NCBI GenBank assembly: GCA_024704765.1
Contig: JAKMXF010000266.1
Coordinates: forward strand, 310,001 to 374,000
From: Oopsacas minuta
Taxonomy: Eukaryota; Animalia; Porifera
Length of the DNA stretch: 64,000 bases
Reading direction: 5' to 3'
Below, one piece after another: positions 1 to 64,000 of this stretch. Each line of letters opens with the position of its first letter. Positions within the stretch are counted from its first letter, which is position 1. A program made the translations under genes and the position numbers. The notes below the pieces were generated by a model. That model was not told where the DNA came from and did no database searches. It worked only from the letters and a program-made list of their open reading frames with translations.

Positions 1-371
1 TGCCTGGATGCGGTATTGAGAATTGTGCTCAATGTTACTCTGGCATTTGTACAGTTTGTTTCAGCAATTATTCTCTAACCTTTGAGAATAGTTGTGGACC
101 GATTCAAGTTAATCCAATACCAATAACCAACACAGACAATACACTTGCAATTATACTAGGCACCATCGCTGGCCTAGCTTTGCTTTGCATGATTATAGCA
201 GGCCTTCTAATAGCCGCAGGAATTGCAATAGTTTATTATAAAAAGTCAAAACTACAACTAATACGAGCAGATCCAGATCCAGATAAGGAAATGAACGGAG
301 TAAACTTTGATAATCCTCTTTATGAAAGTAGGCTAACTGAAAGCAAGGAAAACCTCGTGGAGTCTCCTTGA
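1..371 (+). CDS. 3' end of a single-pass membrane protein: Cys-rich (furin-like/VSP-like) ectodomain segment, TM helix, cytoplasmic FDNPxY tail; 5'-truncated by window edge
   Basis: Frame of ORF 180..371 is open from base 3: PGCGIENCAQCYSGICTVCFSNYSLTFENSC..., then hydrophobic LAIILGTIAGLALLCMIIAGLLIAAGIAIVYY, basic stop-transfer KKSK, and NFDNPLY motif; stop TGA at 369-371. Confidence 0.75.
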   Translation, partial: PGCGIENCAQCYSGICTVCFSNYSLTFENSCGPIQVNPIPITNTDNTLAIILGTIAGLALLCMIIAGLLIAAGIAIVYYKKSKLQLIRADPDPDKEMNGVNFDNPLYESRLTESKENLVESP

Positions 372-1046
372 ATACAAAACGATAGATTGTAACGTATGTT
401 ATGTATCCAGTTACATACTTCCCAACTTGTACCTTTATGTATAATGCTTAGATTTCTGGAATCTATATATAAACTAATTATACATTTTCATGAATTGTGT
501 GCATATTGTAAAACGAGCCTATTGCAGAACTTTCAGCACTCACGATTACGGGCTACCTTCCTATGAATGTTATCCTCATTCCGAATTCCTTCGAGGGAAC
601 ACTGGAATTCCCAGTGAACGGCCCAATATCCCATTTGTAATGTTAAGTCACGCCAATTTTCACTTTTATATCGAAGTTATATTGTCTAAACAGAGAGAAT
701 ATAATTACAGTAGAACTGTGATGAGACATACCACCTCGGGAAACAAAAAATAGTACGTCTCATCAGAATATTTTCCAATACAATTAGTACAAAATTGAAA
801 TTGATGATCCGTTTTTGAGAAAATACTTCTTATCCGAGTTTTACTGTACATTCCAAAACTAATCAAAATGCCATTCCTCCTATAATTGTATTTATTCCTA
901 GTATGCTTATACAGCTTACTAACCAGGAGGTTATCAATCTTCTACTGTCCTTACTTGAATTCTTTTATTGTTTTATTCATTTAATTTACATTATTTCGCT
1001 ATTTTATTGAATTATAGCAATACTATCCTGACCAGACTATACTGTT

Positions 1047-4343: not shown

Positions 4344-5234
4344 ATGGGTAATCTAAGTTGTGTCGGCTCTAGAAGATTGGGTAGCTCGGTTCCAGACCAG
4401 AATTTGAGTGGTTCATTGCCTGGCAGAGACTTCACACAAATTCAAAAGCCTGTTATTGAAATACCACAATTTGCACCTAATAAGTTATTATCAATCTCAG
4501 CACTTACAGTTGATGAAGATAGCATAATATATGCGGTAGACACCTCTTCGAAAGGTGTAGTAGTATTTGCACCTGATGGTCACTTCTTATACAAGTTCAT
4601 TTCGAATGAAATCGGACAGCCTCATTTCATTGAGCCCTGGGGAATTGCAGTTTGGAAAGACCAAATATACGTTTCTGATATATCAAGACATGATGTGCAG
4701 ATTTTCACACTTTCAGGTGATCACATATACACGATAGAATGGTCACTAAAAAGCCCAAAAGGAATCGCTGTATCGCAAACTGGAAATCTCTATGTGACAG
4801 ACGACGCGACAAACTCAGTACAAATATTCAATTCAGAACATAAACAAATTGCTTCAATCGGAAGTGATAAGTTATACAAACCTTGTGATGTGAAAGTTGA
4901 TGCAAAGAATAATGTTTATGTTCTTGACTGGAACAATCCTTGTATGCATATTTTCAACTCATCAGGTGAATTAGTACGAGAATTCGCGACGCGTGGTGAT
5001 CAACAGGAGATTTTCCTTCCATCTTATTTCGCATTAGATTCCTACGGAACCGTTATTATCAGTGATAGCTGGCAATATCCAATAGCCGTATATACTCCCA
5101 CAGGGGAGCTAGCTAAGCAGTACCCAGGCTGGGGTAACCGAATCATCATATTCCATCTTCCTAAAGGTTTAGCAATTGACAAACATGACCGATTTATTGT
5201 CGGTGACATGACACAAGGAATCAAGATATACTGA
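4344..5234 (+). CDS. NHL-repeat beta-propeller protein (TRIM-NHL-like propeller without RING/B-box/coiled coil), intronless, possible N-myristoylation
   Basis: Repeats such as FIEPWGIAVWKDQIYVSD, LKSPKGIAVSQTGNLYVTD, LYKPCDVKVDAKNNVYVLD and [19 protein letters not shown]; N-terminus MGNLSC. Confidence 0.88.
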   Translation: MGNLSCVGSRRLGSSVPDQNLSGSLPGRDFTQIQKPVIEIPQFAPNKLLSISALTVDEDSIIYAVDTSSKGVVVFAPDGHFLYKFISNEIGQPHFIEPWGIAVWKDQIYVSDISRHDVQIFTLSGDHIYTIEWSLKSPKGIAVSQTGNLYVTDDATNSVQIFNSEHKQIASIGSDKLYKPCDVKVDAKNNVYVLDWNNPCMHIFNSSGELVREFATRGDQQEIFLPSYFALDSYGTVIISDSWQYPIAVYTPTGELAKQYPGWGNRIIIFHLPKGLAIDKHDRFIVGDMTQGIKIY

Positions 5235-5640: not shown

Positions 5641-5775
5641 TTCTCCAATTTTACATAACACAAATTCGAGTTACAAATCCCTGATAGAAATCGCGTAATT
5701 GATTCCGAACTCGAATAGTCATTTGATATTTGTATATTCTTATTATTTCCCCATTCAATTTACATATATTCTCAG

Positions 5776-8700
5776 ATATGGGTTACCAATCCTCATGAAA
5801 CATCTGAAATACTCATGACTGAGACAGGGGTGGGTTCTATGGCTCCAAGCACTGTTATAGATTTGTTCAAAGCAACTTGTACAAAATACAGTTCTGTAAT
5901 CGCTATCTGTGAAAAGATCGATAATCAAAAGCTATACACTGGATTTACATATAAGGAATATTGGGAGACGAGTTGGACTGCTGCACGCGCTATGCGTAAG
6001 GTGAGCCTATTAACATGGATTCATTCTTTGTTAGTTGTTTGATTTATTTGAGCCGTTTTTCCTGTTAGCTTGGATTCGAGCCTTTTCGAGCTGTCTGTGT
6101 TGTTGGGTTCAATTCTCATGAATGGTTTGTCTCTTGCATCGCAGCAATGTTAGGAGGGTGAGTTTGTTGGATTTCTTTATGAAATATTTCTGATAAAGTT
6201 TTAAGGTTTATATCTGATACATTTTTATTGTATATCTTTTGGTATACAGTGGTATGTGTGCTGGTGTGTACACTACGAACAGCCCTGATGCTTGTGCTTA
6301 TGTAGCACAAGATTGTAAAGCTCAGCTATACTTTGTTGAAGACGATAAGCAGTTACAGAAAATTCTACAGGTCAGCTGTCTAGAAATGATATTTTTTCGA
6401 AATTCATTGAATATCGTTTTTCTCCAAATTTTCTGACAATTTTATTCCTTTAGGTCCGTGATCGGCTACCTGACTTGAAGTGTATTATTCAGTTCAAAGG
6501 TCAACTGACTGGCCAATATGACAGTGTTATGTTATGGAAAGAATTCTTGGAGATGGGCAGATCTACTACTTCTGCGAAAACTGGTAATTTCTAATAAATA
6601 TTGACATTTTTGCGTTCTGTCATTTTTGCCAAATTGAATTCGGTTTTTTTCAGAGGGAGGAAATGAGGAAGATTCGAAACCTGAGAAAGATAGTATAGAT
6701 ACAGATTTAGAAAACATTGTCCAACAAATAACACCAGAGAGATGTGCTCTACTTATCTATACTTCAGGGACAACTGGGAATCCTAAAGGTGTAATGCTTA
6801 GCCATGATAATGTAAGTGAATTACAAACTCGGTTTCAGCCAAATTCTGCTCCCACCATTTCGCTATTCCCGGGTTTAATACATATACTGTAGGTTTTAAG
6901 TCAACTGATTACAAATAGATTATGCTTGCATTGATTTAGTTTAGAGATATCATGTCTTGGTTAGCCATCTTGTAATAATTATTACGCACAACGAGGGTAG
7001 TATCAACTAATTCTGACTATTTCGTAACACATCTGGTGAATTGGCCTAATAATATTTGATTAGCAACTCTACAACCCGCCTCCCACAAAGAATTTGAATC
7101 ATAATTAAATATTATACTATCATGTTCGGATATCTTCTCAATATCTTATTTTACATCTTGCAATCGTAAAAACACATTTATCTACTAAATATTTCTGGTA
7201 GCCACTCAGAATCTAAGAATCTGATTAGCGTGTCTTTTGAATAGCAATGAGTACGTAGAGTTGAATCATTTTCAAGCTTCCCATCTTAGAATTGAAATCT
7301 CCTTAATTGCCATTAATACAGAGCAATTTTGTGAATTTGTACTGTGTTGAATGCTTGTGGGAATTCTATGTCGCATTTTACAATTGGCTTCAGTTCGAAC
7401 CGGCGTGGCAGTTCGTATGAACTTTTGAATTATGAATTACGAGGAGGAATTTGAAATATTTGCAACTACCATGGAATGTTGTGAAGGGATGGAAAGGATG
7501 GAAGTGACTTGAATTATGATTAGGGAATAGTTTGAGTTCCAAGCTGGTCACAAGGTTTGGAAAATATTTAAATTTAGAAAATCAAATTATGTGAGATGTT
7601 TCGTCATAATTTTCGTTATTTAGTATTTGGGGCGATAGATCAAACAAATTTTAATAGCGCCACTGACAAACATGACCGATTTATTGTATAATTTCGCAGC
7701 GATTAAACGCATATTTCATCCTTGTAACCTCTATAGCTGATGTTTACTGTTGAAGCTATGAGACGATTTAATCCAGACTTTAGGACTGGAGATGAACAAA
7801 TAGTATCTTATCTCCCTCTAAGTCATATAGCAGCTCAGATAGCTGATATATACCTACCTATTTCTGCTGCTGGTACTGTGTGGATTGCTGGGAAGGATGC
7901 GCTTAAGGGTGGATTAGCTAAAACACTGCAAGAGGTTAGACCAACATACTTCTTTGGAGTACCCAGGTGAGATGAATCATATATGTTAGCCAAGCAAATA
8001 TATAGCATGCTAGCCTACTATGAATAATGCTACAGTCTAACTCCACAAACGGGGCCTCTGGAAACTATAGAACGAATTTCTAGTCCCATACAAATGAACC
8101 TCTACAAAAGGAGAATTTTGGCAGAAAAGGGGCATCATTTTCGGCGTCCCTGACATCCCGTTTGTGAAGGTTACATTGTATAATAATTAATGGAGTTGTT
8201 TATTATAAAAAATTATCATTTTAGAGTTTGGGAGAAGATTGAAGAGCGAATCAAATCCGAACTTTCAAAATCCACTGGGTTTAAAGCTAAGATTGTGAAC
8301 TGGGGTATGGAGAAAGGAAAGGTTGGGAATGCGAATAAACAGAAAAATGAACCTGTTCCTTGGGGATGGTTCTTCGCCAGCAAACTTGTATTTTCAAAGG
8401 TTTGTATTTAATTTCTGGAGACTGCGTAGTTTAAAATATATGAATAAATTGATTTTGTATTTTAGATTAGGACTAAGCTAGGACTAGACAGATGTCGTAT
8501 ACAGATAACAGGAGCAGCTCCTATCAGTCCTCAGACCTTAGAGTTCTTCTCTTCCGTTGATCTCGCCCTGTTTGAGCTATATGGTATGAGTGAGAGTACT
8601 GGCGTACAAGTACTCAATCTGCCTCAACCTAATATATGGAAAACTGGGTCTGTTGGGAAACCTTACAATGGCATTGAAATGGCGATATATCAACCTGATG

Positions 8701-10338
8701 CTGATGGTAATGGAGAGGTAGGTTCCTGATTTCGTTGTGCACATAAATACAATGTAACCTCCATTAATGGATTGCAATATGAACCGAGCAAATTCTAGGC
8801 CCCTTCCAAGAAACTCGACAAACGAGGAATTTGGCAGAAACGGTGTAGCAATTTTCAGCGTCCTTAGTTTGTGGAGGTTACACCCTATTTTGATAAGATT
8901 CGTGTATCTCTTTCGTATTTCCAATATGACATATTGTTCTTTATATTTACGTATTTTTCTACAAAGATCATCACGAAAGGCCGTCACGTGTTCATGGGTT
9001 ACTTAGGTCTAGAAGAGAAGACCAAACAAGCAATAGATGAAGACGGCTGGCTACACTCAGAAGATATTGGTAGAGTAGATAAAGATGGATTCTTCTATAT
9101 TACTGGCAGAATTAAAGGTAAGATTATATCCAATCTTTATAGCTTTTCTATTCTATCTATTTTTATAATATTTTATTATTTAGAGATTATAATAACGGCA
9201 GGAGGTGAGAACATCCCTCCAGTGTTAATAGAGAATAGTGTAAAAGCTGAGCTACCCTTCATTAGTAATATTATGGTGATTGGAGATATGAGGAAGTTTT
9301 TGAGTGCTATTATTACTATGCAGGTTAGAAAGACTCTGATTTATTAGTAAATGCGATTCTGATACATATATGATAAAACTTGTTTCATATGATTGTTGGT
9401 GTATTATATGACCAAAAATTGAATTGTACGCAGTTTGCTTGAATATGAGTTGTTATAATTAGGTTACCTTTCAGGAAGTTTAACTATCATTTGTTGTGTA
9501 ACACAGATAATGCATATGTAATCGTATTTTTCAGCTCAGGCGAATTTTAAATACAAATTTAGTAACTTCACCAATGTATTGTTGGAAAATTTATTGGTAT
9601 TATTGACGTAGTTACAATAAAGCGATTCGGTAATAGGTAGATAGAAAATCCGGTTTAAATGAGCATTATATAATGTAAGCGGTTGCTTACCTACTTATAT
9701 ACAAATCTACAGCCTTTTAACATTTGCACTATGTAATAATTCAATTTACTTTCAGTTGGTTATGGACGAGGAAACAGGTTACCCTACACAAGAGATCACT
9801 CCTCTGGCCCGTGACTTCCTCGGTGCTATCAGCTGTAAAGCAACAACAGTATCAGAGATAATTGATGATAGGAATAGTAATGAGGTGGTGTTCAAGGCTA
9901 TTCAAGAGGGAATTGATAGAGCGAATAAAGTAGCTACTTCCAACGCACAAAGGGTAAATTGAATCATATAACAACACACTAGGTGTAACCTCCATAAGCG
10001 GGGCCTTTGGAAACGGAATGAAAAAAATATAGAGCGAATTCATAGCTCCATATAAATGAATCTCCACAAACTGGGTTGGAGGTTATACAGATCCAGTAAC
10101 ATGAATGTCTACATATTTAACAAACAATTGTATATCTAGATTGCAAAATGGTCGCTTTTGGATACAGACTTCTCTATTCCAGGAGGAGAATTAGGTAAGA
10201 CTTTCATTGCTACATTTTATACGGCTAAATAATTTCATTCTTATTAACTTGTTAGGACCTACAATGAAACTAAAGCGTGGTTTTGTAACCGAGAAATATA
10301 AGCGTACTATTGATGCTTTCTACTCGGAGACCAGCTAA
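5776..10338 (+). CDS. ACSBG: Long-chain fatty acyl-CoA synthetase, bubblegum (ACSBG) family; about 13 exons; 5' start unresolved
   Basis: Exons approx. 5776-6000, 6069-6157, 6250-6370, 6453-6585, 6654-6810, 7737-7967, 8226-8399, 8467-8717, 8967-9117, 9185-9323, 9756-9954, 10140-10194, 10256-10338. Motifs [20 protein letters not shown]-binding [74 protein letters not shown]. Confidence 0.92.
8033..8177. mobile_element. MITE family B, copy 1 (ACSBG intron)
   Basis: TIR-like ends AACTCCACAAACGGG ... CCCGTTTGTGAAGGTTACA; interior GGGGCCTCTGGAAAC..TATAGAACGAATT..AAATGAACCTCTACAAA shared with copy 3. Confidence 0.6.
8750..8886. mobile_element. MITE family B, copy 2 (ACSBG intron)
   Basis: CAATGTAACCTCCA ... 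TTTGTGGAGGTTACACCC ends; interior GAATTTGGCAGAAA shared with copy 1. Confidence 0.55.
9980..10089. mobile_element. MITE family B, copy 3 (ACSBG intron)
   Basis: GGTGTAACCTCCATAAGCGGGGCCTTTGGAAAC ... TTGGAGGTTATACA; interior matches copy 1. Confidence 0.55.
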
Positions 10339-10968: not shown

Positions 10969-13900
10969 ATGGATTCAGAAACTCCGCCGCCAGAAGAAGA
11001 CTTCAGTGGTATCCCTCTTGAAGATCGTCTCTCTCATAAGAATTGGAAAGCTCGTGTTTCAGGGTATGAAGAACTCGTAAAGAAATTCCGAATATTAGAA
11101 GAAGACAGTCCAGAATATGTGAAATACTCTTATGATATGAAGAAATACGTTTCTGATACTAATGCAGCTGCCTTAGAAAAAGGCCTAGATGTAGCTGCAG
11201 CCTTCCTTGAATTCGCCAAGATGGAAGTAGCTGGAAAATGTGTACAAGATATAATGCAGGGAATCACAGCTAAATGTTTCAATGCGAGACCCAAAGCGAA
11301 AGAAATAGCGAACAACGTATGCTTGCTTTGTGTTGAAGTTGAGAAACAAGATGTAGTAATCGAGGAACTAATAGCAGGCTGTACTGCTAAAATACCTAAA
11401 GTTGTTATAGGCTGTATTGCTGCTATAACGAATATCGTAGCTAAATTCGGTGCTCATATAATTCAGGTAAAAATCCTCCTCAGAGGGCTAGCTTCACCGT
11501 TTGCTCATACTGATAAGAACATACGTAACGAAGCCAAGAATCTCTCAATTGAGTTATGCAAATGGCTGAGAGCGGATATCCTACGTATTTGCCTCAAAGA
11601 TTTAAAACCAGTTCAGTTGAAGGAACTGGAAGATGAATGGAAAAAAGTAGCTGATGAAGTTCCTAAACCAACTCGCTTTCTCCGCTCCAAACAGAATGAA
11701 CCAGATGAACTAGCAGCTACAGATGATCAGGCTGAAAGTGGAGGTGAAACTACTCCTTTAAAAGACAAGTCGCCCTTATTTGATCCTCTTGAAATGGTAG
11801 ATCCTATTGATCTACGTAAGCATTATCCACCTGACTTTTTCGAGCTTGTAGCCTCTGCAAAATGGAGTGAGCGGAGAGATGCTTTGGGATTATTTCTTGA
11901 GGAAGCTACTAAAGTTATTAAAGTTCTACCAGCTGATTATTCTGAGCTCTTAACAGCTATGCACAAAATGATTACAAAAGACACAAATATATATTGCGTG
12001 CAAAATGCCGCGAAAGTTGTCACAGTTCTAGCCAAGGGCCTGAAAGGACAATTTGAACCACAAGCTAAACTATTCCTAACAGCTGTCCTAGAAAAAATGA
12101 AGGAGAAAAAAGCCGCAGTTGTTGTTGTACTGAGCGAATGTGCTGATGCAATATACCAAACTTCCACAATGCTATTTCTCCATGAAGAGATACTAGAAAC
12201 TCTAGAGAGTAAGAATCCCAATGTAAAATCTGAGACATGTTTATTCACAGCCCGTTGCTTATGTTACTGCTCTCCTACTACCTTAACTAAACCTATAATT
12301 AAAGTGTTAGTACCTTCTCTATTGAAGCGATTAGATGACACTACACCTCAAGTACGTGATGCTGCCTCTATGGCTCTTGGCACGTGCCTGAAAATATTAG
12401 GCGATCGCCCTCTGGCTTTATACTTTGAAGATGTAGAAAAGAATAAAAGGGCTAAGATCCAAGAAGCTTCAGACAAAGCTGAACTTAAGGTCTCACAAGG
12501 AGCTAAGAAAGCTGTTACCAAGGCTAAAGAACCTGCGAAAAAAGAAGAGAAACAACCTGCAAAAGCTAAAGAAGATAAAGCCAAAACTGCTAAAAAGACA
12601 ATCAAAACCAACGTAACTAAATCCACCAGTCTTACCAAAAGTACTTCTAAGACTAACGTAACTGCGAAAGCCAAAACTAGTGGTTCAAAGGTTAAAACAG
12701 ATGATTTTCTGCCAAATTTCGAAAACGAGCCTTCCTACTCACCTGAAGAGTTGGATGCTATGGCTCAGGAAAGTTTTGGAGAAGATATACTAACAAGATT
12801 ATCTGACTCTAAATGGAGAGATCGATGTGATGCTTGTACAGAAGTGAAAGAGATTTTAGAAACGATAAATGAGGATAAAATAAATTCACAAATGTATATC
12901 CATGTAATCATGGTCAAACCAGGTTTAGCTGATGGCAACCTTCAAGTCATGAATCTGAAATTCTCCATGATCGGGTTCCTAGCCAAACGAGCACCAGACT
13001 GGGGCAGTAGATGTACTGAAGCTGTAATCGCTACTCTCGGTGAGAAATTAGGTGAAATGAGACTGAAAGCTACCAGCACTGAATCACTATTCTGTATTTC
13101 AGAGCGTATACAGTCCCTGCATCATGTAGCTCTCACTGTAATGAGTGTATGTTCTAATCATAAAAGTCCTAAGATACAAACTGAAGGATTTATATGGCTA
13201 GCAACTGCATTAGTCGAGTTTGGACTGAAAGTCAAACTTCCTGCATTTGTTGGTTACATCAAAACTGGACTTGCTAGTACCAACCCAAACATTAAAAGTG
13301 CTAGTCTCAAACTATTATCTGCTTTCGCTGTATTCTTCAGTACAAACATAGACGCGTTTAAAGGAATGCTAGGTGAGATTAACCCTAATATAAAAGGTAA
13401 AGTTGACAAAGAGATCCAAGTTTCAACAGAAAGTCCACCATCAAAACCTACACGTAGTCTGAAACCTAAAGATGCAGATGATGACAGTACGACAGATGAC
13501 AGTAGTAGTATGAATATGGATGATATGATCCCCCGTGTAGATATCAGTGGAAATTTCAAAGGAGCTATCATGGATAATCTCGCTGATAAGAAGGATTGGA
13601 GATTGAGGAATGAAGCCTTAGAAGAAATTAAAACTATCCTAAAACAGAGCCCTTCTATAACTCCTAATCTTGGTTTGCTTCCTGCAGGGCTAAAAGCACG
13701 TCTGAGTGATTCAAACAAAAATCTTGTCTGTACAACCCTCGGTATTATAGGCTCGTTAGCAGCTAAGTTAGGCCCTGGATTGACTAAAATAGTACGTGTC
13801 TTACTGCCTGCAGTACTGAACGTATTAACTGATGCTAAAGCTAATGTGAGAGAAGCGGCAATATTAACGCTGAATGCTTGGCACCAAAATCTTAAATTAT

Positions 13901-17202: not shown

Positions 17203-17558
17203 ATTCAAAATCTTCAGTACCCTGTTTAGAAATTAGACTTGAAGTAATCATCCTTGGTATTTACTTGATTTTGTGTTCTTCATTACCTTACAAATGTATG
17301 TTCTCATTATTCATACAATGTTGTACACTATTTGTGCCTCTCAGGTTACTTAATGACTGATGATAAGTACAGTTATAGTTTCCACTTTACCAGATAGTTC
17401 TGGTCCATGGGTGTTTGAGTCCGTGAATGTATATAAATTTGGCGAGCAAAAGTGCATATAATGCATGCATTTATACACGAATTTGACCAATGTTTTGTTG
17501 TTTAAATGTTGTTTCCAATGAATTTCTCACAGATATTTTACATTATCAAGCTATAATT

Positions 17559-18167
17559 ATGAACCCTGAAATTTTAAAAAGCATTGAAAATGTCTGTATA
17601 GTCAATATTAAGTCTGAAGGTTCGTTTGACAAACTTCGTTCAGAATGCATCGGAGAAATCCAAAAGGAATACCAATTCCAACAACTTCGTTCTCAAATTG
17701 AAGATCAAACTATTAATTATATAAAAGGTAAGAGGGAGCGTTCAAGCGGGTCGCAAAGTAAAAGTGAAATCAGGGGAGGACTCAGAACCTATTTAAACGA
17801 TGCATTGAATGGAATTCTTAAACCACAAATGGATTCTTTAGTTGATTCAATTATTAAGAGTCAAGAAAGTTACATGAGGCAGATTGTAAAGCAAACTGTT
17901 GAGTCTATATCTAACCCGGTTAAGGAATATTCTCCTCCTGGAGATAATTGTATACCTGAATTGGGTGCTGAACTTGTTGTACTGCCCTCTGTTTGTGAAG
18001 ATGCAGGGCAGCCAATTTACGAGGAAACTATCACAAACAATACCAACAACAACAACAATAACAACAACAATGATGATGATGATGCTCATAATATAGATAA
18101 TGAAGAAGATGTTATTACAGCTATAACCCCTGATTCTATGTTACTATACTCTGATAGTAATAATTAA
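17559..18167 (+). CDS. BOD1: BOD1-family (BOD1/Shg1 domain) protein with Asn/Asp-rich acidic tail
   Basis: IVNIKSEGSFDKLRSECIGEI..EYQFQQLRSQIE..KSEIRGGLR matches the recalled BOD1 N-terminal domain (LKSRGLFDSFRRDCL..YQNLRQKV..KNQLRNGLR). The ATG at 17559 follows the acceptor-like TTTCTCACAG. Confidence 0.75.
   Translation: MNPEILKSIENVCIVNIKSEGSFDKLRSECIGEIQKEYQFQQLRSQIEDQTINYIKGKRERSSGSQSKSEIRGGLRTYLNDALNGILKPQMDSLVDSIIKSQESYMRQIVKQTVESISNPVKEYSPPGDNCIPELGAELVVLPSVCEDAGQPIYEETITNNTNNNNNNNNNDDDDAHNIDNEEDVITAITPDSMLLYSDSNN
18036..18085 (+). repeat. (AAC)n/(GAT)n coding microsatellite (poly-Asn/poly-Asp)
   Basis: ACAAACAATACCAACAACAACAACAATAACAACAACAATGATGATGATGATG. Confidence 0.8.
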
Positions 18168-18467
18168 TAAATGCAATTAAATATTATAATAATTGTCTGT
18201 TATAATTTGAGTTGTCGCCTAATAACAAAATTCGTCGAATAGCATTTTTCTCGAAGGACATAGAGAGTGGATTTTGTATTGGAATAGTTCCTCTAATAGC
18301 AAGTCCCGGATTAGCAAGCGAAATTCGTGAAATAGGACTTGCAAACTACACTGTGTTAGCAATAAAATTGACTTTAATTATTAGAAACTGAAAATTATTA
18401 ACCAAAATCCACAGTTATTAACTCAGTCATTATAGTTTCTAAACATTCCTTATCCGTTACCGGGTAG

Positions 18468-53361: not shown

Positions 53362-55845
53362 ATGTTTTTTGGGGGCACATTACTCGTGGCTGAAACGAAG
53401 ATTTTGGTACTCTTGAGTTGCTTTGTATTATCTTTATATAGTATTAATGTGATCAACATTGCAGGATTATATTCAGAGGATGGGAATTTGTTCGCTCCAC
53501 AATTTAAATATATCGGTGAGTTCGCTAAAGACCTTGTCAATAACGCAACCAATATTTTACCGAACTATCGGTTAAATATCGATTGGAAAAATTCTCAATG
53601 TAAGAGCAGGTCAGCTGTAAACGAGATACAAAGTTTCATTCAAGATCAAAGTGTAATTTACCATTTTGTTCTGGGCCCGGCGTGCTCGATTTCAGCAGAA
53701 CCAGTTGGCCAAATTATTCCGAGCTATTACTTGAATATGTTAGCATATTCCGCAACTTCACCAGGTCTGACATCTGCTTCGTATCCGAATACTTTTTTGG
53801 GGGTGGTAACCTATAATACATATGTTGTTGTTTGGATTAAGTTGGTGCAATTTTATGGATGGCGAAGAGTAGCAATTATCGGACAAGACACCGGCGTGTT
53901 CAACATAGTAGGGTCGAACTTTGGTGAGCAATTAAAGGACCTGGATGTAACCTTTGACAGCGAGCGAATCATAGATGGGAATGAGGAGGAAATTGATGAC
54001 AAATTAGATCGTATTTTTCTAACCAAGAAGTACAGAATAGTTTTTGCAACATTTTATGAAGGACAAGGGTATAAGGTTCTTTGTAGAGCTCACAAAAAGG
54101 GTTATGTTTATCCATACGTAACTTGGGTGTTACCTTCATGGTATAGTAAAACATGGGTTGAGAGAGGTGAAAGCACTTGTCAATTTTGTCAAGGGTGCGA
54201 CATTGATGTTACGTTGAAAGGCGCACTAGGAGTAGATTCTGTATCCACTCGAGAGCAATTAATAAGTAACAACACAGATACTATACTCGGTCTCAAACAG
54301 CAAGAATTATGGAGCATGTTCACCGACAAGTATGTACTTAATGATGTGAATGAAGAATACTTACCATATATTTTTGATAGTTTGCTTTCAATTGCTTTGA
54401 CATTTAACGCAAGCTTACAAAAGGGAATAGATTTGACTCAATTTAATTATCATCAAGCAGATAATGCACCAATAAATACTGTAATCCTGGAATCATTGCA
54501 GAACTCAATTGAAGAATTGGATTTTGCAGGATTGACTGGCCAGGTTAATTATCATGGAAGGGCCCGCCGATATTCGAATGCAGAATTATCTGAGTATATT
54601 AACGGAAACTTTAAACCACTGATTAACATACCGAATATTGGCGGAGATATTAGTAGCTACATTGGAGAACCATATATAAATTTCAATGAAGCAGAGTTTG
54701 AGTATTTTGGAATGCAAGCTGGACCTCTTGATGGAGTGGAGCTCCATCACTTGCCAATATCAGCAATAGTGATCTCCGTTATATTCGCATTTTGCGCGCT
54801 TATCTTTTCAGTTTTCTTTCTAGTATTTAACATAATTTTCAATAAGAAAAAGGTTATCAGGTACAGCAATCCTATCCTGAACTCTTTTATCTTAATTGGA
54901 GCATGTCTACAGTGTGGAGTAGCGATACTCGTTTTGATCGATAACAGAATTCTTCAACGCACTCCAGAGCAGCAACGGAACAATGAAGAATGTATCGGAT
55001 GCACAATCTTGTGTCACTTGGTTTGGTGGGTTCCTGCATTAGCTACTGACATAATATTTGGAACACTAGTTGGGAAATCAGTTCGTATATACTCCATCGT
55101 AATTAGGAAATCTTTGGTAAACAAAGTTAAAATACTATATGTCATCCTTTTTATCGGTGGATTGATGTTATTCGATACGGTTTATACTGTTATTTGGATT
55201 GCCATAGAAGCACTCAGATTCCAATTCATAGCTGAAGGTCCTCTTCAAACAGATCTGCCAAACATTAAGCAACCTGGAGCTCCATTTTGGTACATTTTCT
55301 ACTGTGCAGAAGGTGGTGATCCAAGTTCTCCTGCAATTGCAGTTCGTTTCGTGTATATACTTTTCAGATGGATCCTCTATGGAGTAGGATTATACTTTGC
55401 ATTCCAAATTCGTAAAGTGAACATTCGTGGAGTGAATGAATTCCAGTCAATTACATTAGCCACTTTAGTGACCATTTTCTTCAACTTAGTTCGTATCATT
55501 CTCATCACAATGATTCCATCAGTGAGGCTGATTGACACTGCTATTACTCTACTGTCTATAAGCTATGCACTCGATGCTATATTTGTTATAGGTTTCATAT
55601 TCGTACCCAAATTGTTTTACATACTTAGTGATCCGAAAGAGAAGAAGAATTACACAAAAGTTCACAACACCTCAACTATCAATAATAGTGTATTGTATGA
55701 TAAACAATTAGCGAAAGTTCAAGAAGAACTTGATCATGTGAAGTATGAACGTGACGCTCTGAGCCAAAACGTTCTCGATATTCCAAAAACTCCTGTTGAT
55801 AAAATGTGCCCAACTTCCCAAGGCGATCCGAGTTTAAGTAAATAA
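53362..55845 (+). CDS. GABA-B-receptor-like class C GPCR, copy 2
   Basis: Same architecture as copy 1; 7TM nearly identical, Venus flytrap diverged. Confidence 0.9.
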   Translation: MFFGGTLLVAETKILVLLSCFVLSLYSINVINIAGLYSEDGNLFAPQFKYIGEFAKDLVNNATNILPNYRLNIDWKNSQCKSRSAVNEIQSFIQDQSVIYHFVLGPACSISAEPVGQIIPSYYLNMLAYSATSPGLTSASYPNTFLGVVTYNTYVVVWIKLVQFYGWRRVAIIGQDTGVFNIVGSNFGEQLKDLDVTFDSERIIDGNEEEIDDKLDRIFLTKKYRIVFATFYEGQGYKVLCRAHKKGYVYPYVTWVLPSWYSKTWVERGESTCQFCQGCDIDVTLKGALGVDSVSTREQLISNNTDTILGLKQQELWSMFTDKYVLNDVNEEYLPYIFDSLLSIALTFNASLQKGIDLTQFNYHQADNAPINTVILESLQNSIEELDFAGLTGQVNYHGRARRYSNAELSEYINGNFKPLINIPNIGGDISSYIGEPYINFNEAEFEYFGMQAGPLDGVELHHLPISAIVISVIFAFCALIFSVFFLVFNIIFNKKKVIRYSNPILNSFILIGACLQCGVAILVLIDNRILQRTPEQQRNNEECIGCTILCHLVWWVPALATDIIFGTLVGKSVRIYSIVIRKSLVNKVKILYVILFIGGLMLFDTVYTVIWIAIEALRFQFIAEGPLQTDLPNIKQPGAPFWYIFYCAEGGDPSSPAIAVRFVYILFRWILYGVGLYFAFQIRKVNIRGVNEFQSITLATLVTIFFNLVRIILITMIPSVRLIDTAITLLSISYALDAIFVIGFIFVPKLFYILSDPKEKKNYTKVHNTSTINNSVLYDKQLAKVQEELDHVKYERDALSQNVLDIPKTPVDKMCPTSQGDPSLSK

Positions 55846-56435: not shown

Positions 56436-58994
56436 ATGTTTTTGTGTGTAAAACATTGGCAATTTTTCATACTCTTGAGTTGTCTCGTGATATTACCTGT
56501 AAATAGTATTAATGTAATCAACATAGCCGCATTATACTCAAAGGATGGAGGTTGGGTTGCACCAGAAATGAGAAATATCGGCGAGTTCGCTAAAGACCTA
56601 ATTAACAATTCAACTAATATACTACCTGACTGTCAGTTAAATATCGATTGGAAAAACTCACAATGTCAGAGCAATGCAGCTGTGAACGAAATACAATCTT
56701 TCCTTCAAGATCAGGGTGTAATTTATCATTTCGTTCTGGGCCCTGCATGCTCGATTTCAGCAGAACCAGTTGGCCAAATCATTCCAAACTTTTACTTAAA
56801 TATGATGGCATATTCTGCCGCTTCACCAGACCTAACTACTGATTCTTATCCGAATACCTTCTTGGGTGTGGTAACATTTGATGCAAATGTTGTAATTTGG
56901 GTTAAATTGATTCAATTTTATCAGTGGCGAAGAGTAGCGATTATCGGACAAGATACTGGTCTTTTCAACACTGTTAATTTAAATTTTGGCGAACAATTAA
57001 ATGAATTGTCTGTATCATTTGACATCGCACGAATTATTGAAGGGGAAGAGAAAGAAATAGATACTATGCTAAGTCGAATTTTCCAGACAAATGAATACAA
57101 AATCGTTTTTGGCAACTTTTATGAAGGAGAAGGATATAAAGTTCTCTGTAGAGCCTATCTAATGGGGTATATTTACCCATATGTAACTTGGGTGTTGCCA
57201 GGTTGGTGGGCCAGTGGTTGGATTGAGAGAGGTGAAAGCGACTGTCAATTCTGTGAAGGGTGTGACATTAATGCTGCATTGAAGGGTGCACTAGGAGTAG
57301 ATTCATTATCTACTTTAGAGCAATTGATTATTAACAACGATGATACAGTACTCAATCTCAAGCAGCAAGAAATATGGAACATGTTCGCTGAGAACAATGT
57401 AGTCACTGACGCTAACATAGAAAAATACTTACCATATACTTTTGATAGTTTGCTTTCATTTGCTTTGGCATTGAACGCTAGCCTACAAAATGGAATAGAT
57501 TTGAGTCAATTTAATTATCATCGAGCAGATAATGCATCAATAAATAGTGAAATCGTGGAATCATTGAAAAACTCACTTGCAGGTGTTGATTTTGCTGGAT
57601 TGACTGGTGAGGTGAATTATCAGGGAAGAGCACGAAAATATTCAAATGGTGAACTATCCGAGTATGAAAATGATGGAAATTTCAAATCATTGATTACCAT
57701 ACCGAATGTTGGAGGAAATCTAAGTAGCAGTCTTGAAGGATCTTCTTATATAGACTTCAACACATTGGATTTTGAGTATTTTGGAATGCAAGCTGGACCT
57801 CTTGATGGAGTGGAGCTCCATCACCTGCCAATATCAGCAATAGTGATCTCCGTTATATTCGCATTTTGCGCGCTTATCTTTTCAGTTTTCTTTCTAGTAT
57901 TTAACATAATTTTCAATAAGAAAAAGGTTATCAGGTACAGCAATCCTATCCTGAACTCTTTTATCTTAATTGGAGCATGTCTACAGTGTGGAGTAGCAAT
58001 ACTCGTTTTGATCGATAACAGAATTCTTCAACGCACCCCTGAGCAGCAACGGAACAATGAAGAATGTATCGGATGCACAATCTTGTGTCACTTGGTTTGG
58101 TGGGTTCCTGCATTAGCTACTGACATAATATTTGGAACACTAGTTGGGAAATCAGTTCGTATTTACTCCATCGTAATTAGGAAATCTTTGGAAAATAAAG
58201 TCAAATTAATCTACATCATCCTTTTTATCGGTGGATTGATGTTATTCGATACGGTTTATACTGTTATTTGGATTGCCATAGAAGCACTCAGATTCCAATT
58301 CATAGCTGAAGGTCCTCTTCAAACAGATCTGCCAAACATTAAGCAACCTGGAGCTCCATTTTGGTACATTTTCTACTGTGCAGAAGGTGGTGATCCAAGT
58401 TCTCCTGCAATTGCAGTTCGTTTCGTGTATATACTTTTCAGATGGATCCTCTATGGAGTAGGATTATACTTTGCATTCCAAATTCGTAAAGTGAACATTC
58501 GTGGAGTGAATGAATTCCAGTCAATTACATTAGCCACTTTAGTGACCATTTTCTTCAACTTAGTTCGTATCATTCTCATCACAATGATTCCATCAGTGAG
58601 GCTGATTGACACTGCTATTACTCTACTGTCTATAAGCTATGCACTCGATGCTATATTCGTTATAGGTTTCATATTCGTACCCAAATTGTACTTCATTGTT
58701 CGTGACCCACATCAGAAAAAGAACTATACTGGTGTGAACAATGTTTCAACAATTGATTACAGTGCAATCTATAAAATGCAAATCACAAAAATTCAGGGTG
58801 AACTAGAAATTATTACAACTGAACGTGACGCTTTGCTCAGTAAAATGGAGATGTCTTCACCTACCTCGGAATCTATTTCCATGATGAATCCGATTTTTGG
58901 AGATATTGACAAGTTGACGGCGAAATCTGAACCTGAAGCAGGAGTAAATGTAATTGAGAATTCAATTGGCAAAAACGAACTTCCTGAAAACTAA
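56436..58994 (+). CDS. GABA-B-receptor-like class C GPCR, copy 3 (ATG at 56436 preferred over the ORF-track start at 56424)
   Basis: Same architecture; MFLCVKHWQFFILLSCLVILP signal-peptide-like start. Confidence 0.9.
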   Translation: MFLCVKHWQFFILLSCLVILPVNSINVINIAALYSKDGGWVAPEMRNIGEFAKDLINNSTNILPDCQLNIDWKNSQCQSNAAVNEIQSFLQDQGVIYHFVLGPACSISAEPVGQIIPNFYLNMMAYSAASPDLTTDSYPNTFLGVVTFDANVVIWVKLIQFYQWRRVAIIGQDTGLFNTVNLNFGEQLNELSVSFDIARIIEGEEKEIDTMLSRIFQTNEYKIVFGNFYEGEGYKVLCRAYLMGYIYPYVTWVLPGWWASGWIERGESDCQFCEGCDINAALKGALGVDSLSTLEQLIINNDDTVLNLKQQEIWNMFAENNVVTDANIEKYLPYTFDSLLSFALALNASLQNGIDLSQFNYHRADNASINSEIVESLKNSLAGVDFAGLTGEVNYQGRARKYSNGELSEYENDGNFKSLITIPNVGGNLSSSLEGSSYIDFNTLDFEYFGMQAGPLDGVELHHLPISAIVISVIFAFCALIFSVFFLVFNIIFNKKKVIRYSNPILNSFILIGACLQCGVAILVLIDNRILQRTPEQQRNNEECIGCTILCHLVWWVPALATDIIFGTLVGKSVRIYSIVIRKSLENKVKLIYIILFIGGLMLFDTVYTVIWIAIEALRFQFIAEGPLQTDLPNIKQPGAPFWYIFYCAEGGDPSSPAIAVRFVYILFRWILYGVGLYFAFQIRKVNIRGVNEFQSITLATLVTIFFNLVRIILITMIPSVRLIDTAITLLSISYALDAIFVIGFIFVPKLYFIVRDPHQKKNYTGVNNVSTIDYSAIYKMQITKIQGELEIITTERDALLSKMEMSSPTSESISMMNPIFGDIDKLTAKSEPEAGVNVIENSIGKNELPEN

Positions 58995-59334
58995 TGATAC
59001 TGATCGCTTTTTACTGTGAAAACTTTACGTATATTGTTAAGAAATAATTTTTTAGCTTTTATTTCTATTTGACTAGTAGTCATTATAATGTCGGCTGTAG
59101 AAATTCGTTTATGCTGAGGATCGTTCTTATTAAACTTAAATATTTATAATTATATATTTCGGCTCTTAATAGAACTTTTGATATTTCTATATACGTAATA
59201 TACTTCATTGTTTTGAGTTCATGTAACAGTACCACAACCTCAAATTGTTCAATAATATAATTTCCATTTTTCCAAAGGATTTTATCTGTGATATAATATT
59301 TTCACCTGCTATTGACAATTTATTAGATATTACA

Positions 59335-60209
59335 ATGAGCATACATCCGCCTTCCAACCCTAAACGTATTGGTATAGTTGGTTATGGATCACTGGGCCAG
59401 TACCTAATGAAGGAGTTGAAAGATAATCCTGCTTATAAGATTGTGTTTGTCTGGAATAGAACTCTCGATAAGTTGGCTGGTGTGCCTTCAGATTTGATTC
59501 TATCAGATTTGAACAATTGTGCCAGTTATACTCCTGACTTGATAATTGAGGTTGCTCACCCTTCTATTACTGAACAATTTGGAACAAAATTTCTACAAAA
59601 TGCTGATTATTTCTCAGGTAATAATTGTATAAGTGTATGTACGAACCTAATCACCCAATTTAAGGTTCTCCTACCGCTTTTGCGTTGAAAAAGGTTGAAG
59701 ATGCCATGCGAGCTATTTCTAGTCCCCACGGAGTGTACATACCCGCAGGGGCATTATGGGGTGCAACAGATATAAAGAAAATGGCAGATAGAGGTAACCT
59801 GGAATCACTTCGTGTAACAATGATCAAACATCCTTCCTCTTTCAAACTAACTGGTGAATTGTTGGAAAAATTGGAAAAATCTGATCCCACGAAACTAATC
59901 ACACTCTATGAAGGTCCAGTACGTGATCTTTGCCTTTTGGCTCCACAAAATGTTAATACAATGGCTGCAGCTTGTATTGCTGGTCATACTCTAGGTTTTG
60001 ATAAAACTATAGGCTGTCTCTGTGCAGACCCAGCTCTAGACAAGCATCAAATCATCATTGAAGCATTCGGTACTGGTGGATTTAAGGTTGTCACTCAACG
60101 TGATAATCCTTCTAAGATCGGTGCAGTGACGGGACAAGCAACCTATGCATCGTTCCTAAGTTCAGTTAATAATGCTGGAGGCAAGGGACCTGGCTTCCAT
60201 CTATGCTAA
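59335..60209 (+). CDS. ASPDH: Aspartate dehydrogenase domain-containing protein; 2 exons (59335-59617, 59665-60209)
   Basis: Rossmann IGIVGYGSLG, IIEVAHP; a 47-nt intron joins DYFS-GSPTAFA; YIPAGALWG, KHPSSF, LAPQNVNTMAAA, GAVTGQATY. Confidence 0.9.
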
Positions 60210-61265
60210 TTCTTATTATTTTCATACAATACAAATAATTATAGTGTAAACTATATATTGTAGAATTCTCATTCCCCATGTAATGCTATTTAAACAATAA
60301 TAATAATTAGTAATACTAATTAGAATTATATTAATTCTTCAAGAATCTATATTCAGCTAAATTATGGATTGAATCATACCAAATAATACCTTCGTACCTC
60401 GTGAAATCATCGAATCCAATAATTATTTGGCTATACGTTTGTAAATCACATGGGTAGTGTCGACTAACCATATTCCATAGGAATATAATCTAAAGTTGAT
60501 TCAATATTATAGCCATTGTTTCAAATCACATATGATTTGAAAATTGTATTAGTTCAATATCATGTTGTAATACTTAAAGTTATATTTCATTATATTTGCC
60601 CACCTGCCAGATCTCATGCTGCAATATCATTGTATTGGCGCTATAAAAGTACAATTAGTCCTGCTGGCCAATAAGCTCTTAATATCCGTTTAATATTTTG
60701 TCTTAGAAACCAATTTATTTATTATTTCGTTTTGAACTGTATAAGATTAATGCATTGATTCTTAGATTGTTTCTACAACAATATTTGAGCTGTTTTGGCC
60801 CAAAAATCATAGCCCAAGCGTGAATGGATAATTACAAATTTAGTGTGGCACTTTCGGTTAATATGATTCAAAATTATCATGTACCCGACTAATTACCATT
60901 GCCCTCGACAACAATCTGGACTGTATATGTATTGAAACACGGACAGCTGACAAATTGTTATGTAGTACAAATATTTCTGCCGAACTATATACGAGGTGAA
61001 AATTGTTAAGAGATTCATTTAGGGTCAACAACTCAGTAGTATTCATATAGTACCTAGGCTTAATTGAAATTCATTTTGCTACCGTTTTTATTGAATACAC
61101 ATTTTGCCATACAATTGAATAGAATGTAACCTTATAATATATGCAGCCATAACATCTGCTTTAAACGCTCTGGACAGATGTACTTAAAGATTTTAGATGA
61201 GATTTTGTTCGTATGACTAAAATATTGGTTAGCTTTATATTAAATTTTATTAAATGGATAGCATA

Positions 61266-64000
61266 ATGTCACTGCGAACACGCTTCAAGAAGAAAAACGA
61301 TTATCCATTCTCTAAAACACTTCTTCATGAGTTATCAGAACTATTTTTTTGTGAAGGCTACAAGCTTTATTCCGGACAAAACAGCCTTTCTCTAACTGGT
61401 CAATTCCTGGGGCAATTTCTCATATACTATGACTCCTATTCTACCAACCAATCACAAAATTTGATCCGCTCCAGTCTGAGATTTAATGTTAAATCAGCTG
61501 CGAAAGAAATGAACTATATTCGTGAGTGTTTTGAGAAAGTTCAATGTTTAAAATTAATCGTTGACGTCAGATATCCATTTGAAAATCCAATCCAACTCTT
61601 CCCGTTTGATAAAATTAAAGTATTAGTTATCAAGAAGTGTCCTGTGAACATGATTTACGGTTTGAAACGACTTAGGAGACAATTACAAACATTTGTCCTA
61701 AACTATTCCATCTCACTGTTTGATGAAGTTATTGCAGATTGTGGTGGCGATCAAGCTGAACCCGAAGAGTGGATGGCTCTTGATGAACTGGACTTAAGCT
61801 ATAATTCTATCATCGAAATTAAAGATTCGCGTTTATCGTTAGTTCATTCAATAACAAAACTAGATCTCAGTCATAATCAATTAAGTGAAGAGAGAACAGA
61901 CTTTAGGGAATTGGATAAACTGCTACAGATAAACTTAGGGTACAACTTTTTAAAACACATCCCTTTCTTCCATGCTCACACAATGGTTTCAATACATACA
62001 CTGATCCTACGCAACAACAATCTCTCAGCTTTGGATGGTGTTGAAACTCTAAGACAGCTCTCTGTATTGGATTTAGGCTATAACTGTTTGGATCTGCATA
62101 TGATACTCGATCGTCTCGATGCATTGCATTTCCTGCAGAACTTACAATTAATCGGAAACCCTCTATCGTACCATAAGAGACACAGACAACTGACACTATT
62201 TAAATTATCTCATGCAATTGATGTGGAAACATTCATCCTTGATGACGTAACTCTGAGTATTTCTGAGACGAAAGAGTTTCTTAGAAACGTTCAATTGAAT
62301 GCTAGCTATCATTCCTCCTTGAGTTCGCCATCACATCTCAATTTCTTCAGCTCCAGTTCAAGTCAATCTCATTCTTCAAGCCGAGGACGTAGAATATCTT
62401 CTATTCGTACCATAGAGTTAGATGACACTGACTCACAACGGGGATCTGTGATTGAAGATTTCAGACAAATTGAAATCAGAGATAGATTAACAGCGAAAGG
62501 TGTACTTCGTACTCAAATGGGACCTGCATGGTTGTCTTCGCAAGAAGAAAGTCCTCAAAGAATTACAAAGCCAGTGCATCGCTCAAAACACAAGCAAACG
62601 CATCATACACTCCCTTCACCAACAAAAGCTATTCTCAATGAAGTCACTACTTCGAGCTCAAAACCAAACTCTCCAATAGTTAAAAGTAAACTAAAGGAAG
62701 GGAAGGATAATTCTCTTCCAGAATCTCAACAAAGTTACCAGATAGAAGCATTTGTAGATAATTACTCACCAATGCTAGAATACCCTGACCTAGTTACGAA
62801 AGAATGCCAGCGAGAAGATGAAACTTCCGCCAGAACTCCTGTTAATGTCGAGGAAGTATCAATACACAATTCTCCACATCTCATAGACGAAGAACAGTAT
62901 CTAGTTTACAGTTATGACACAGACGATGAAGAATCTCAGAGAGAGCCATTTTTCATATCATTATCATGCAACAGACTTTATGAACTTAACTACGAAGGGA
63001 AATCTATTCAAGATTACGATATGAATTGTCTTGAGTCAGCCGTTCAATCTGAGAAGAGACCAAATTCTCCTACACAAAATGAAACTAGACAAATTCTTTC
63101 ATTGAAGTTCAATTATCAGAGGAGAGATATGCGGAAGAGAGAATATATATTCGAGAAAGCTCAGAATTTTGAGCTTCTCATCAAGAAATTACAAGATATC
63201 GCGATAGATAATGCAAAGCTAAATCCATTGAAGAGCACATACGAATGCTTAAAATGCAATTCTGTCTATGAGAAGACACAAATGTTGTATTCCTATCCAA
63301 TTAATGAACATTCAAACGATTCTTCACAATCTGTTATAAACTGCCCCCAATGTGGAAGCCAACAACTCACAGATGATTCTAAACTCTCCGTTAAAGATCG
63401 CGAATTGGTTGATTCAGGAACAGCTTTCGTAAGAAAAATGACCCCAGTTGAGATCCGAACATCATATCTAGACAATAGTATAGCAAGTCCAAAGACAAGC
63501 TTGACTAGCAAAGAACTAAACAGAACGAAGCGCGTAGCTATCAGCAAAAAGGAATCTTCTTACTTTTCTGAGAATAAAGTAACTAAATATCGTAAAAAGA
63601 GCATAGATGAAATTCAAGCTCCAGACGATACATTTGAATCCGATTATGAAATGGTTTTACGAAAGAAAGAATCAGCTATAGATGTCCTCTTGACTGACAA
63701 TCAATCTGTATTAGAAAATGCACATAGAAATTTTGAAGCTGACAAATTAATTGACTTTTCTAATGTGAAGTCAAGTGAGAAAGTAGTAGGTAAGGGAAGC
63801 TTCCGTAGGCGAGATAAGCAACCTTACGTTCAACTCTCTGATAGTATGATTGCTAATGATGCAAGAGGACTTACCAAAACTCACATACATACTGATGACA
63901 CTACATCTAATTTTAGAAAGCCTTTTACGAGGCCAAGAGTAAACACATCTCCTTTAGAAGATCTTCAAGAAAACTCGAGCCAAAGTGACAGTGAGAGAAG
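61266..64000 (+). CDS. STK11IP: STK11/LKB1-interacting protein (LRR), 5' portion; runs off the window end and is absent from the ORF track
   Basis: Open frame from ATG 61266: PIQLFPFDKIKVLVIKKCPV..GLKRLRRQLQT..ADCGGDQ..WMALDELDLSYN..LDLSHNQL (LRRs), later YECLKC..INCPQCGS. The same frame is open at the last bases (DLQENSSQSDSER). Confidence 0.85.
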   Translation, partial: MSLRTRFKKKNDYPFSKTLLHELSELFFCEGYKLYSGQNSLSLTGQFLGQFLIYYDSYSTNQSQNLIRSSLRFNVKSAAKEMNYIRECFEKVQCLKLIVDVRYPFENPIQLFPFDKIKVLVIKKCPVNMIYGLKRLRRQLQTFVLNYSISLFDEVIADCGGDQAEPEEWMALDELDLSYNSIIEIKDSRLSLVHSITKLDLSHNQLSEERTDFRELDKLLQINLGYNFLKHIPFFHAHTMVSIHTLILRNNNLSALDGVETLRQLSVLDLGYNCLDLHMILDRLDALHFLQNLQLIGNPLSYHKRHRQLTLFKLSHAIDVETFILDDVTLSISETKEFLRNVQLNASYHSSLSSPSHLNFFSSSSSQSHSSSRGRRISSIRTIELDDTDSQRGSVIEDFRQIEIRDRLTAKGVLRTQMGPAWLSSQEESPQRITKPVHRSKHKQTHHTLPSPTKAILNEVTTSSSKPNSPIVKSKLKEGKDNSLPESQQSYQIEAFVDNYSPMLEYPDLVTKECQREDETSARTPVNVEEVSIHNSPHLIDEEQYLVYSYDTDDEESQREPFFISLSCNRLYELNYEGKSIQDYDMNCLESAVQSEKRPNSPTQNETRQILSLKFNYQRRDMRKREYIFEKAQNFELLIKKLQDIAIDNAKLNPLKSTYECLKCNSVYEKTQMLYSYPINEHSNDSSQSVINCPQCGSQQLTDDSKLSVKDRELVDSGTAFVRKMTPVEIRTSYLDNSIASPKTSLTSKELNRTKRVAISKKESSYFSENKVTKYRKKSIDEIQAPDDTFESDYEMVLRKKESAIDVLLTDNQSVLENAHRNFEADKLIDFSNVKSSEKVVGKGSFRRRDKQPYVQLSDSMIANDARGLTKTHIHTDDTTSNFRKPFTRPRVNTSPLEDLQENSSQSDSER

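Follow-up and report, generated by a model that had tools for sequence, protein, structure and literature searches.

A 64-kb stretch of the genome of the glass sponge Oopsacas minuta (the window; G000:C266:310001-374000, plus strand) was found to belong to a one-way gene array that is real, conserved and mosaic, and that is not one operon. The window, which includes CKAP5, BOD1, KIFBP, MAD1, SEC62, ACOX, LEO1, BARD1, WDFY3, INTU and three class-C receptor genes, lies on a contig (C266) of 574,913 bases in an assembly of 61,460,524 bases and 365 contigs. The explanation that we favour, with a probability of roughly one half, is a mosaic array of several transcription units that contains candidate small operons. 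Positions are those of the window unless preceded by C266 or by the name of another locus.

Extent of the one-way array

Open reading frames (ORFs) were identified by Pfam searches, with the spliced genes (i.e. LEO1, KIFBP, MAD1, an AMP-binding gene and ASPDH) being searched exon by exon, and 100 kb of flanking DNA was examined on each side of the window, giving a total of 264 kb (C266:210001-474000). All Pfam-supported ORFs of the window, including SEC62, were located on the plus strand, bearing out the claim made from the sequence alone that every supportable coding sequence has this orientation. The bias continued beyond the window. Over the 264 kb, the plus strand carried 69 of 76 ORFs of at least 200 aa, 113 of 125 ORFs of at least 120 aa and 161 of 172 kb of ORF bases (94%); the flanks alone, which lay outside the DNA covered by the sequence-only reading, contained 55 long ORFs on the plus strand as compared to 7 on the minus strand. 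An unbroken plus-strand run of ORFs of at least 200 aa extended over ~120 kb (C266:278184-398101) and comprised ~29 independent loci when paralogue clusters were counted once. Six more distant probes on C266 (i.e. TRAP-beta at 83 kb, an M17 peptidase at 86 kb and Ras genes at 156, 481, 526 and 530 kb) were also all on the plus strand. The plus-dominated domain has a length of 264 kb or more, with ~450 kb being probable.

The sequence-only reading had set the likelihood of a random layout at (1/2)^16. This figure is right for one place, but across ~16,340 genes ~0.25 such runs are expected per genome, and the window alone is therefore not decisive. The genome-wide chance expectation for ~29 one-way loci is ~6e-5. 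Tandem duplication has contributed to the array, as the receptor triplet and a cluster of SRCR receptor tyrosine kinases (C266:288-306 kb) consist of tandem duplicates, but these were the only paralogues in the window and flanks, respectively, and the other loci belonged to unrelated Pfam families. The flanks contained 14-3-3, M16 peptidase, macro-WWE-PARP, MyTH4-FERM myosin, RNase P p29 and teneurin-like genes, among others, in addition to the kinase cluster. An assembly artefact is contradicted by the same order and strand in independently assembled relatives and by DNA contigs of other sequencing runs that cover part of the window colinearly. Chance, duplication and artefact taken together have a negligible likelihood of accounting for the array.

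Conservation and breaks in related glass sponges

Homologous loci were reached through ACOX and INTU homologues in four ENA assemblies of related glass sponges. The closest relative (L022, ERZ25071281; ACOX identity of 81%) carried the entire CKAP5-to-WDFY3 order on one strand. Both L023 (ERZ25072740; 74%) and L024 (ERZ25072730; 76%) exhibited the order CKAP5-BOD1-KIFBP-MAD1(SEC62)-ACOX-LEO1, where the brackets denote the position of SEC62 between MAD1 exons, followed by TRAP-beta and M17, again on one strand. A shorter one-strand order, KIFBP-MAD1(SEC62)-ACOX-LEO1 followed by TRAP-beta and M17, was observed in L031 (ERZ20067936; 69%). The KIFBP-to-LEO1 segment was hence head to tail in four of four relatives, with CKAP5-BOD1 upstream in three of the four. 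An additional zf-TRAF gene (L031 12432-13739) was inserted between ACOX and LEO1 in L031 on the same strand as its neighbours; insertion into the array therefore preserves the direction of the latter.

Conservation of adjacency and orientation did not extend to the LEO1|BARD1 junction or to the receptor triplet. LEO1 and BARD1 were adjacent only in Oopsacas and L022, with TRAP-beta and M17 taking the place of BARD1 in L023, L024 and L031 and metallophosphatase matches falling between these two genes in L023 and L024. The LEO1|BARD1 junction is probably derived, given that LEO1 is followed by TRAP-beta in the most distant relative. A WDFY3-INTU-receptor block was detected in two assemblies (L029 in ERZ25072730, INTU identity of 69%; L030 in ERZ20067936, 56%) at 70–90 kb from the ACOX block, on the same contig and the opposite strand. 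The three receptors, all on the plus strand in Oopsacas, were oriented -,+,+ in L029 and +,-,+ in L030, with a different copy inverted in each (L029 13806-16379; L030 17219-19798). Judged by these arrangements, the receptors are autonomous units, and the window joins older blocks, at least two in number. Neither the LEO1|BARD1 junction nor those of the receptors can be internal to an operon.

RNA in the ACOX-LEO1-BARD1 region

Four of five public runs were compared over positions 26001-32000, all in the form of contigs rather than raw reads. Run X4 behaved as RNA, with three GT..AG joints in LEO1, adapter tails and an exon-heavy depth; run X5 derived from a close relative or another population (identity of 95–99%). 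Separate mRNAs were apparent from the RNA contigs, whose depths were ~1,540–1,660 for ACOX, 2,393 at the LEO1 joint and 480–625 for BARD1.

The two spacers of this region differed. The ACOX-LEO1 spacer (28247-28508) was spanned by one RNA contig of 246 nt (28259-28504) with a depth of 140. This value was ~30-fold higher than the depth of the retained LEO1 intron 2 (i.e. 4.5), indicating more than ordinary precursor in the spacer, with read-through, a long untranslated region and a dicistronic RNA as possible sources. The contig breaks suggest that a change occurs after 28288, 42 nt downstream of the ACOX stop codon, and at 28475, the AG of a CATAG. In the LEO1-BARD1 spacer (30731-30929), there was no contig depth at 30801-30906, because the value for bin 30801-31000 (257.9) equals 548.7 x 94/200 and is produced by the BARD1 contig alone. 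This BARD1 contig begins at 30907, at an AG (30907-30908), and has three unmatched letters attached.

Spacer anatomy and a model for expression of the array

Spacers within the window were 199–410 nt in length, a range short enough for operons, and the sequence-only values for LEO1-BARD1 (199 nt), ACOX-LEO1 (262 nt), WDFY3-INTU (277 nt) and BOD1-KIFBP (300 nt) were all correct. The BOD1 start codon had been placed at 17490; this was replaced by an ATG at 17559 that is conserved in four species, giving a CKAP5-BOD1 spacer of 356 nt. Stop-to-start spacers in the relatives were 81–128 nt for BOD1>KIFBP and 150–173 nt for MAD1>ACOX; with 403 nt, the MAD1-ACOX spacer of Oopsacas exceeds the full range of 150–272 nt recorded in relatives. 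The short-spacer argument for operons is stronger in the relatives (81–173 nt) than in Oopsacas. The Oopsacas MAD1-ACOX spacer also contains a short multi-copy element (26094-26129; depth of 1,323 versus 232) at which DNA contigs of three runs break, with many continuations.

Alignment of spacers between species was poor except for a GU-rich element after the stop codon and a TAG/AAG before the start codon. The former was represented by an invariant TTGTGTT located 69–75 nt past the CKAP5 stop codon and by a conserved TTTGGATTTTT-like GU-rich element 24–35 nt past the ACOX stop codon. The latter was conserved at 0–26 nt ahead of the KIFBP, LEO1, ACOX and M17 start codons. Both features occur in the ACOX-LEO1 spacer, where the conserved TAG ends at 28497. 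Over the 264 kb, a T-rich, AG-poor zone was present at -20 to -40 of start codons. Two other candidate signals were rejected. The palindrome TGACGTCA, considered as a promoter mark, has three copies in the window (17132, 31682 and 61562) as compared to 0.75 expected, all inside coding ORFs; a further copy immediately precedes the BOD1 start codon in L022. Base skew of spacers, considered as a trace of through-transcription, was uninformative (AT skew of -0.04; GC skew of 0.00).

In the favoured model, the window is the core of a head-to-tail array, unbroken for ~120 kb, in a compact genome, in which an older CKAP5-BOD1-KIFBP-MAD1(SEC62)-ACOX-LEO1 block and an older WDFY3-INTU-receptor block have come to adjoin on one strand in Oopsacas and its closest relative. 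Each gene gives rise to its own mature mRNA, with a 3' end predicted to lie tens of bases past the stop codon, beside the conserved GU-rich element, and a 5' end placed at a splice acceptor that precedes the start codon by a few bases. This acceptor most likely receives the glass-sponge spliced leader. The array would contain several transcription units, with BARD1 and the receptors starting independently, and the candidate small trans-spliced operons would be BOD1>KIFBP, MAD1>ACOX and ACOX>LEO1, together with SEC62 inside MAD1. Small operons resolved by the leader are a plausible, putative feature of the CKAP5-LEO1 block, with odds that are roughly even, and the pairs that merit a direct RNA test of putative co-transcription are narrowed to BOD1>KIFBP, MAD1>ACOX and ACOX>LEO1.

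Operons or one promoter per gene

Several observations weigh against leader-resolved operons. A cytochrome b561 gene is present on the minus strand (C266:398302-399117; L014 4302-5117), flanked by plus-strand genes and located 200 nt from the preceding gene and 466 nt from the following Peptidase_S28 gene. Divergent gene pairs in the flanks fit two promoters and two leaders into ORF-to-ORF spacers of just 346–466 nt. A promoter plus leader can therefore fit into ~200 nt, and the 200–400-nt spacers of Oopsacas are compatible with a promoter for each gene. A YAG occurred within 13 nt of the ATG in 26 of 47 genes over the 264 kb, a modest excess over the one third or so expected, and a strict test (i.e. 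an AG at most 50 nt from the start codon, with pyrimidines at 7 of the 10 positions preceding it) showed no enrichment, with 21 of 60 genes passing as compared to 41% of random positions. The leaders of receptors 1 and 2 contain a GTAAGT...YAG that resembles an ordinary small intron. No leader sequence was seen among the contig loose ends listed, and contigs cannot prove a single molecule spanning two genes. In Aphrocallistes, a leader of ~37 nt was carried by ~4% of long cDNA reads (PMC10282587).

The alternative is that there are no operons, that each gene has a compact promoter and that the one-way layout is an evolutionary by-product. Rare inversions in hexasterophorans, combined with selection against convergent or antisense transcription in a densely packed genome, would cause head-to-tail order to accumulate and then to persist. 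We treat this as a strong competitor whose likelihood falls somewhat below one half. It is favoured by the divergent pairs and by the minus-strand cytochrome b561 gene, the pair formed by this gene and Peptidase_S28 showing how compact divergent promoters can be. The presence of one inverted receptor per triplet in two relatives, the LEO1-BARD1 spacer without RNA and the differing contig depths of neighbouring genes point in the same direction. Synteny between Aphrocallistes vastus and Oopsacas minuta extends to approximately half of their genes, with few inversions (PMC10282587); as such microsynteny is general in these sponges, conserved gene order is weak evidence for operons. Separate promoters sit less easily with the 81-nt BOD1>KIFBP spacer of one relative, which must also hold 3' signals, with SEC62 lying on the same strand between MAD1 exons and with the continuous RNA across the ACOX-LEO1 spacer at ~30 times the intron-retention level. 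Moreover, rare inversions account for the persistence of the array but not for how ~29 loci became one-way.

Orientation across the genome

A genome-wide proxy for gene orientation was obtained from the positions and strands of Pfam matches to protein kinases, Ras GTPases and helicases. Cross-family pairs within 100 kb comprised 77 on the same strand versus 72 on opposite strands (52%) with no trend by distance; concordance at 30–60 kb was 0.46, which suggests that most gene pairs of this kind lie outside arrays longer than 30–60 kb. Four unselected ACOX-paralogue loci in the relatives were evenly split, with two being mixed-strand with long spacers (L025 and L026) and two nearly all on one strand (L027 and L028). 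These two results indicate that the genome is a mosaic and is not kinetoplastid-like. At least three ACOX paralogues occur in Oopsacas itself, including one on C266, and two paralogues in L026 occupy opposite strands in a back-to-back arrangement.

Giant kinetoplastid- or dinoflagellate-type units, whether a single one or a few, i.e. at least 100 kb in length with rare start regions and mRNAs cut by trans-splicing and polyadenylation, would fit the one-strand placement of 94% of ORF bases, the orientation of the six distant probes and the existence in this class of sponges of spliced-leader trans-splicing. Tens of genes on one strand are indeed found locally (~29 loci in 120 kb), but the layout is not that of the whole genome and autonomous genes occur inside the array, i.e. 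cytochrome b561, further minus-strand ORFs of 340–450 aa at C266:250-278 kb and the receptors inverted in relatives. When the near-equal concordance of unrelated families, the two mixed-strand paralogue loci, the zero RNA depth in the LEO1-BARD1 spacer and the differing RNA levels of neighbouring genes are added, giant units are very unlikely.

The sequence-only reading had proposed that the array may be one or several animal operons. The operon-like layout stood, together with conserved YAG sites and the 81–150-nt spacers of relatives, whereas the evidence was against one or a few large operons: the LEO1|BARD1 junction occurs only in Oopsacas and its closest relative, the WDFY3-INTU-receptor block is flipped in two other relatives, positions 30801-30906 are not covered by any RNA contig, minus-strand genes are embedded in the array and divergent promoters are compact. 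A bolder proposal, in which glass-sponge chromosomes contain directional domains of 100 kb to ~0.5 Mb where runs of unrelated housekeeping genes are transcribed as polycistrons resolved by the spliced leader, is unlikely. If true, these would be the first sponge operons, would greatly exceed in length the co-oriented transcription domains of every other animal and would explain the rarity of inversions in glass sponges. A one-way array of >100 kb in an early-branching animal raises the questions of whether leader trans-splicing loosens the need for one promoter per gene and whether gene direction constrains chromosome rearrangement.

Gene content of the window

The window contains 17–19 genes, all on the plus strand; the one-strand layout of the 19 genes originally counted holds, and the exact number is less certain because an NHL-repeat ORF may belong to the teneurin-like gene. 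The tail of the latter ORF, which starts at C266:306877 and encodes teneurin-type EGF repeats (EGF_TEN of 3.4e-64 on the upstream part), occupies positions 3-368. The NHL-repeat ORF (4344-5234; NHL of 4.5e-21 and a weak TEN_NHL match) represents a gene of its own or, alternatively, a downstream exon of the teneurin-like gene. These two ORFs are separated by 4 kb of otherwise empty AT-rich DNA containing a low-complexity ORF (1761-2039) that is rich in proline, glutamate, alanine and valine and is a possible exon or small gene. A codon-usage score trained on the flanks of the window identified one ambiguous low-complexity stretch (1724-2039), a repeat with a high content of proline, glutamate and valine, which was coding-like on both strands and slightly better on the plus strand. 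Real minus-strand genes in the gaps had been named as a finding that would count against the array; none that were convincing emerged from the ORF scan or the codon-usage score, and no minus-strand ORF of at least 120 aa in the window was free of a larger plus-strand ORF. Scans of the window for tRNAs and Rfam families gave no match.

Next is a multi-exon AMP-binding (acyl-CoA synthetase-like) gene (5719-9347), defined by AMP-binding (8e-15 at 6638-6889) and AMP-binding_C_3 (8871-9347) matches and by coding scores. CKAP5/XMAP215 is a single ORF of 2077 aa with TOG domains (10969-17202; XMAP215_CLASP_TOG of 2.4e-92), and is followed by BOD1 (17559-18167), recognised by its COMPASS-Shg1 domain, and by multi-exon KIFBP (18468-21153; KBP_C of 1.8e-38 and 5.2e-17). 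MAD1 (21303-25867) is also multi-exon, with coiled-coil exons upstream and MAD-domain exons downstream of SEC62 (22755-23531; Sec62 of 1.5e-36). As this exon layout and the position of SEC62 recur in L022, L023, L024 and L031, SEC62 is probably nested within a MAD1 intron. An exact-protein look-up of SEC62 among transcript contigs, in which records from the same genome may be missing, gave no match. The four spindle/kinetochore genes CKAP5, BOD1, KIFBP and MAD1 are consecutive (10969-25867), with order and strand kept in L022, L023 and L024 and with KIFBP and MAD1 retained in L031; this run hints at a functional grouping.

Peroxisomal acyl-CoA oxidase (ACOX; 26270-28246) has a single exon and was identified by Pfam and protein homologues. 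LEO1 (28509-30730), identified by Pfam, has four exons with RNA-defined GT..AG joints at 28766>28965, 29510>29777 and 29986>30041. A BARD1-type RING protein of 1548 aa (30930-35576; zf-RING_6 of 5.2e-10) precedes a WDFY3/ALFY-like BEACH-WD40-FYVE gene (35655-46599), whose main ORF (36220-46596) has Beach (2.1e-116) and FYVE (6.7e-19) matches. ORF 35607-36221 is probably the first exon of WDFY3, judging from the presence of the same small ORF in L022. INTU (Inturned; 46877-49807) was assigned from Pfam and homologues. The three class-C receptors, identified by Pfam as having ANF_receptor and 7tm_3 domains, lie in tandem at 50216-52771, 53362-55845 and 56436-58994. An aspartate dehydrogenase-like gene (ASPDH; 59245-60209), also found by Pfam, is divided between two overlapping frames (59227-59685 and 59664-60206), reflecting a short intron or a frameshift. 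The last gene encodes STK11-interacting protein (STK11IP, with LRR and PH_S11IP Pfam matches), which begins at 61254 and runs through the end of the window at 64000 to C266:375333.

Comparison with known systems

Spliced-leader operons occur in nematodes, tunicates, chaetognaths and a number of protists, and those of nematodes and tunicates are not known to exceed about 8–11 genes. No publication addressing gene orientation in glass sponges emerged from our literature search. For trans-splicing of a spliced leader, glass sponges are a documented case (PMC10282587, PMC7986045), in line with the sequence-only statement on this point, and a 2021 survey lists hexactinellid sponges as having leader trans-splicing and no reported operons (PMC7986045). 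Operons, polycistrons and orientation did not turn up in a word search of the Oopsacas genome paper; a search of the Aphrocallistes study gave neither gene orientation nor polycistrons, with 'operon' occurring only in the reference list (PMC10282587).

The Oopsacas array resembles kinetoplastid polycistronic units in having tens of unrelated genes running one way for >100 kb within a strand-biased domain of hundreds of kb. It differs from them in not being genome-wide (52% concordance), in its embedded opposite-strand genes and interspecies flips, and in the zero RNA depth of one spacer. Unidirectional blocks of dinoflagellates, as reported for Symbiodinium microadriaticum (PMC8110479), share with it long co-oriented stretches in a spliced-leader lineage, whereas the present array belongs to an animal with a compact 61-Mb genome and is a mosaic interleaved with mixed-strand regions.

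Operons of nematodes and tunicates (i.e. the SL2 type of C. elegans and those of Ciona and Oikopleura) are similar in that unrelated genes are arranged head to tail, a U/GU-rich element follows the 3' end, the acceptor lies just before the start codon and the lineage has a spliced leader. Distances from cleavage to acceptor are also comparable, being 136–209 nt here for the predicted cleavage sites. The Oopsacas run differs in being far longer, in that neither a two-gene RNA nor a leader was seen at window genes in the contigs examined, in that no specialised downstream leader is known and in that operons are unreported in sponges (PMC7986045). Finally, conservation of the gene order of the window in relatives agrees with the hexasterophoran microsynteny described between Aphrocallistes and Oopsacas (PMC10282587), to which the present analysis adds the strand rule together with its breaks.

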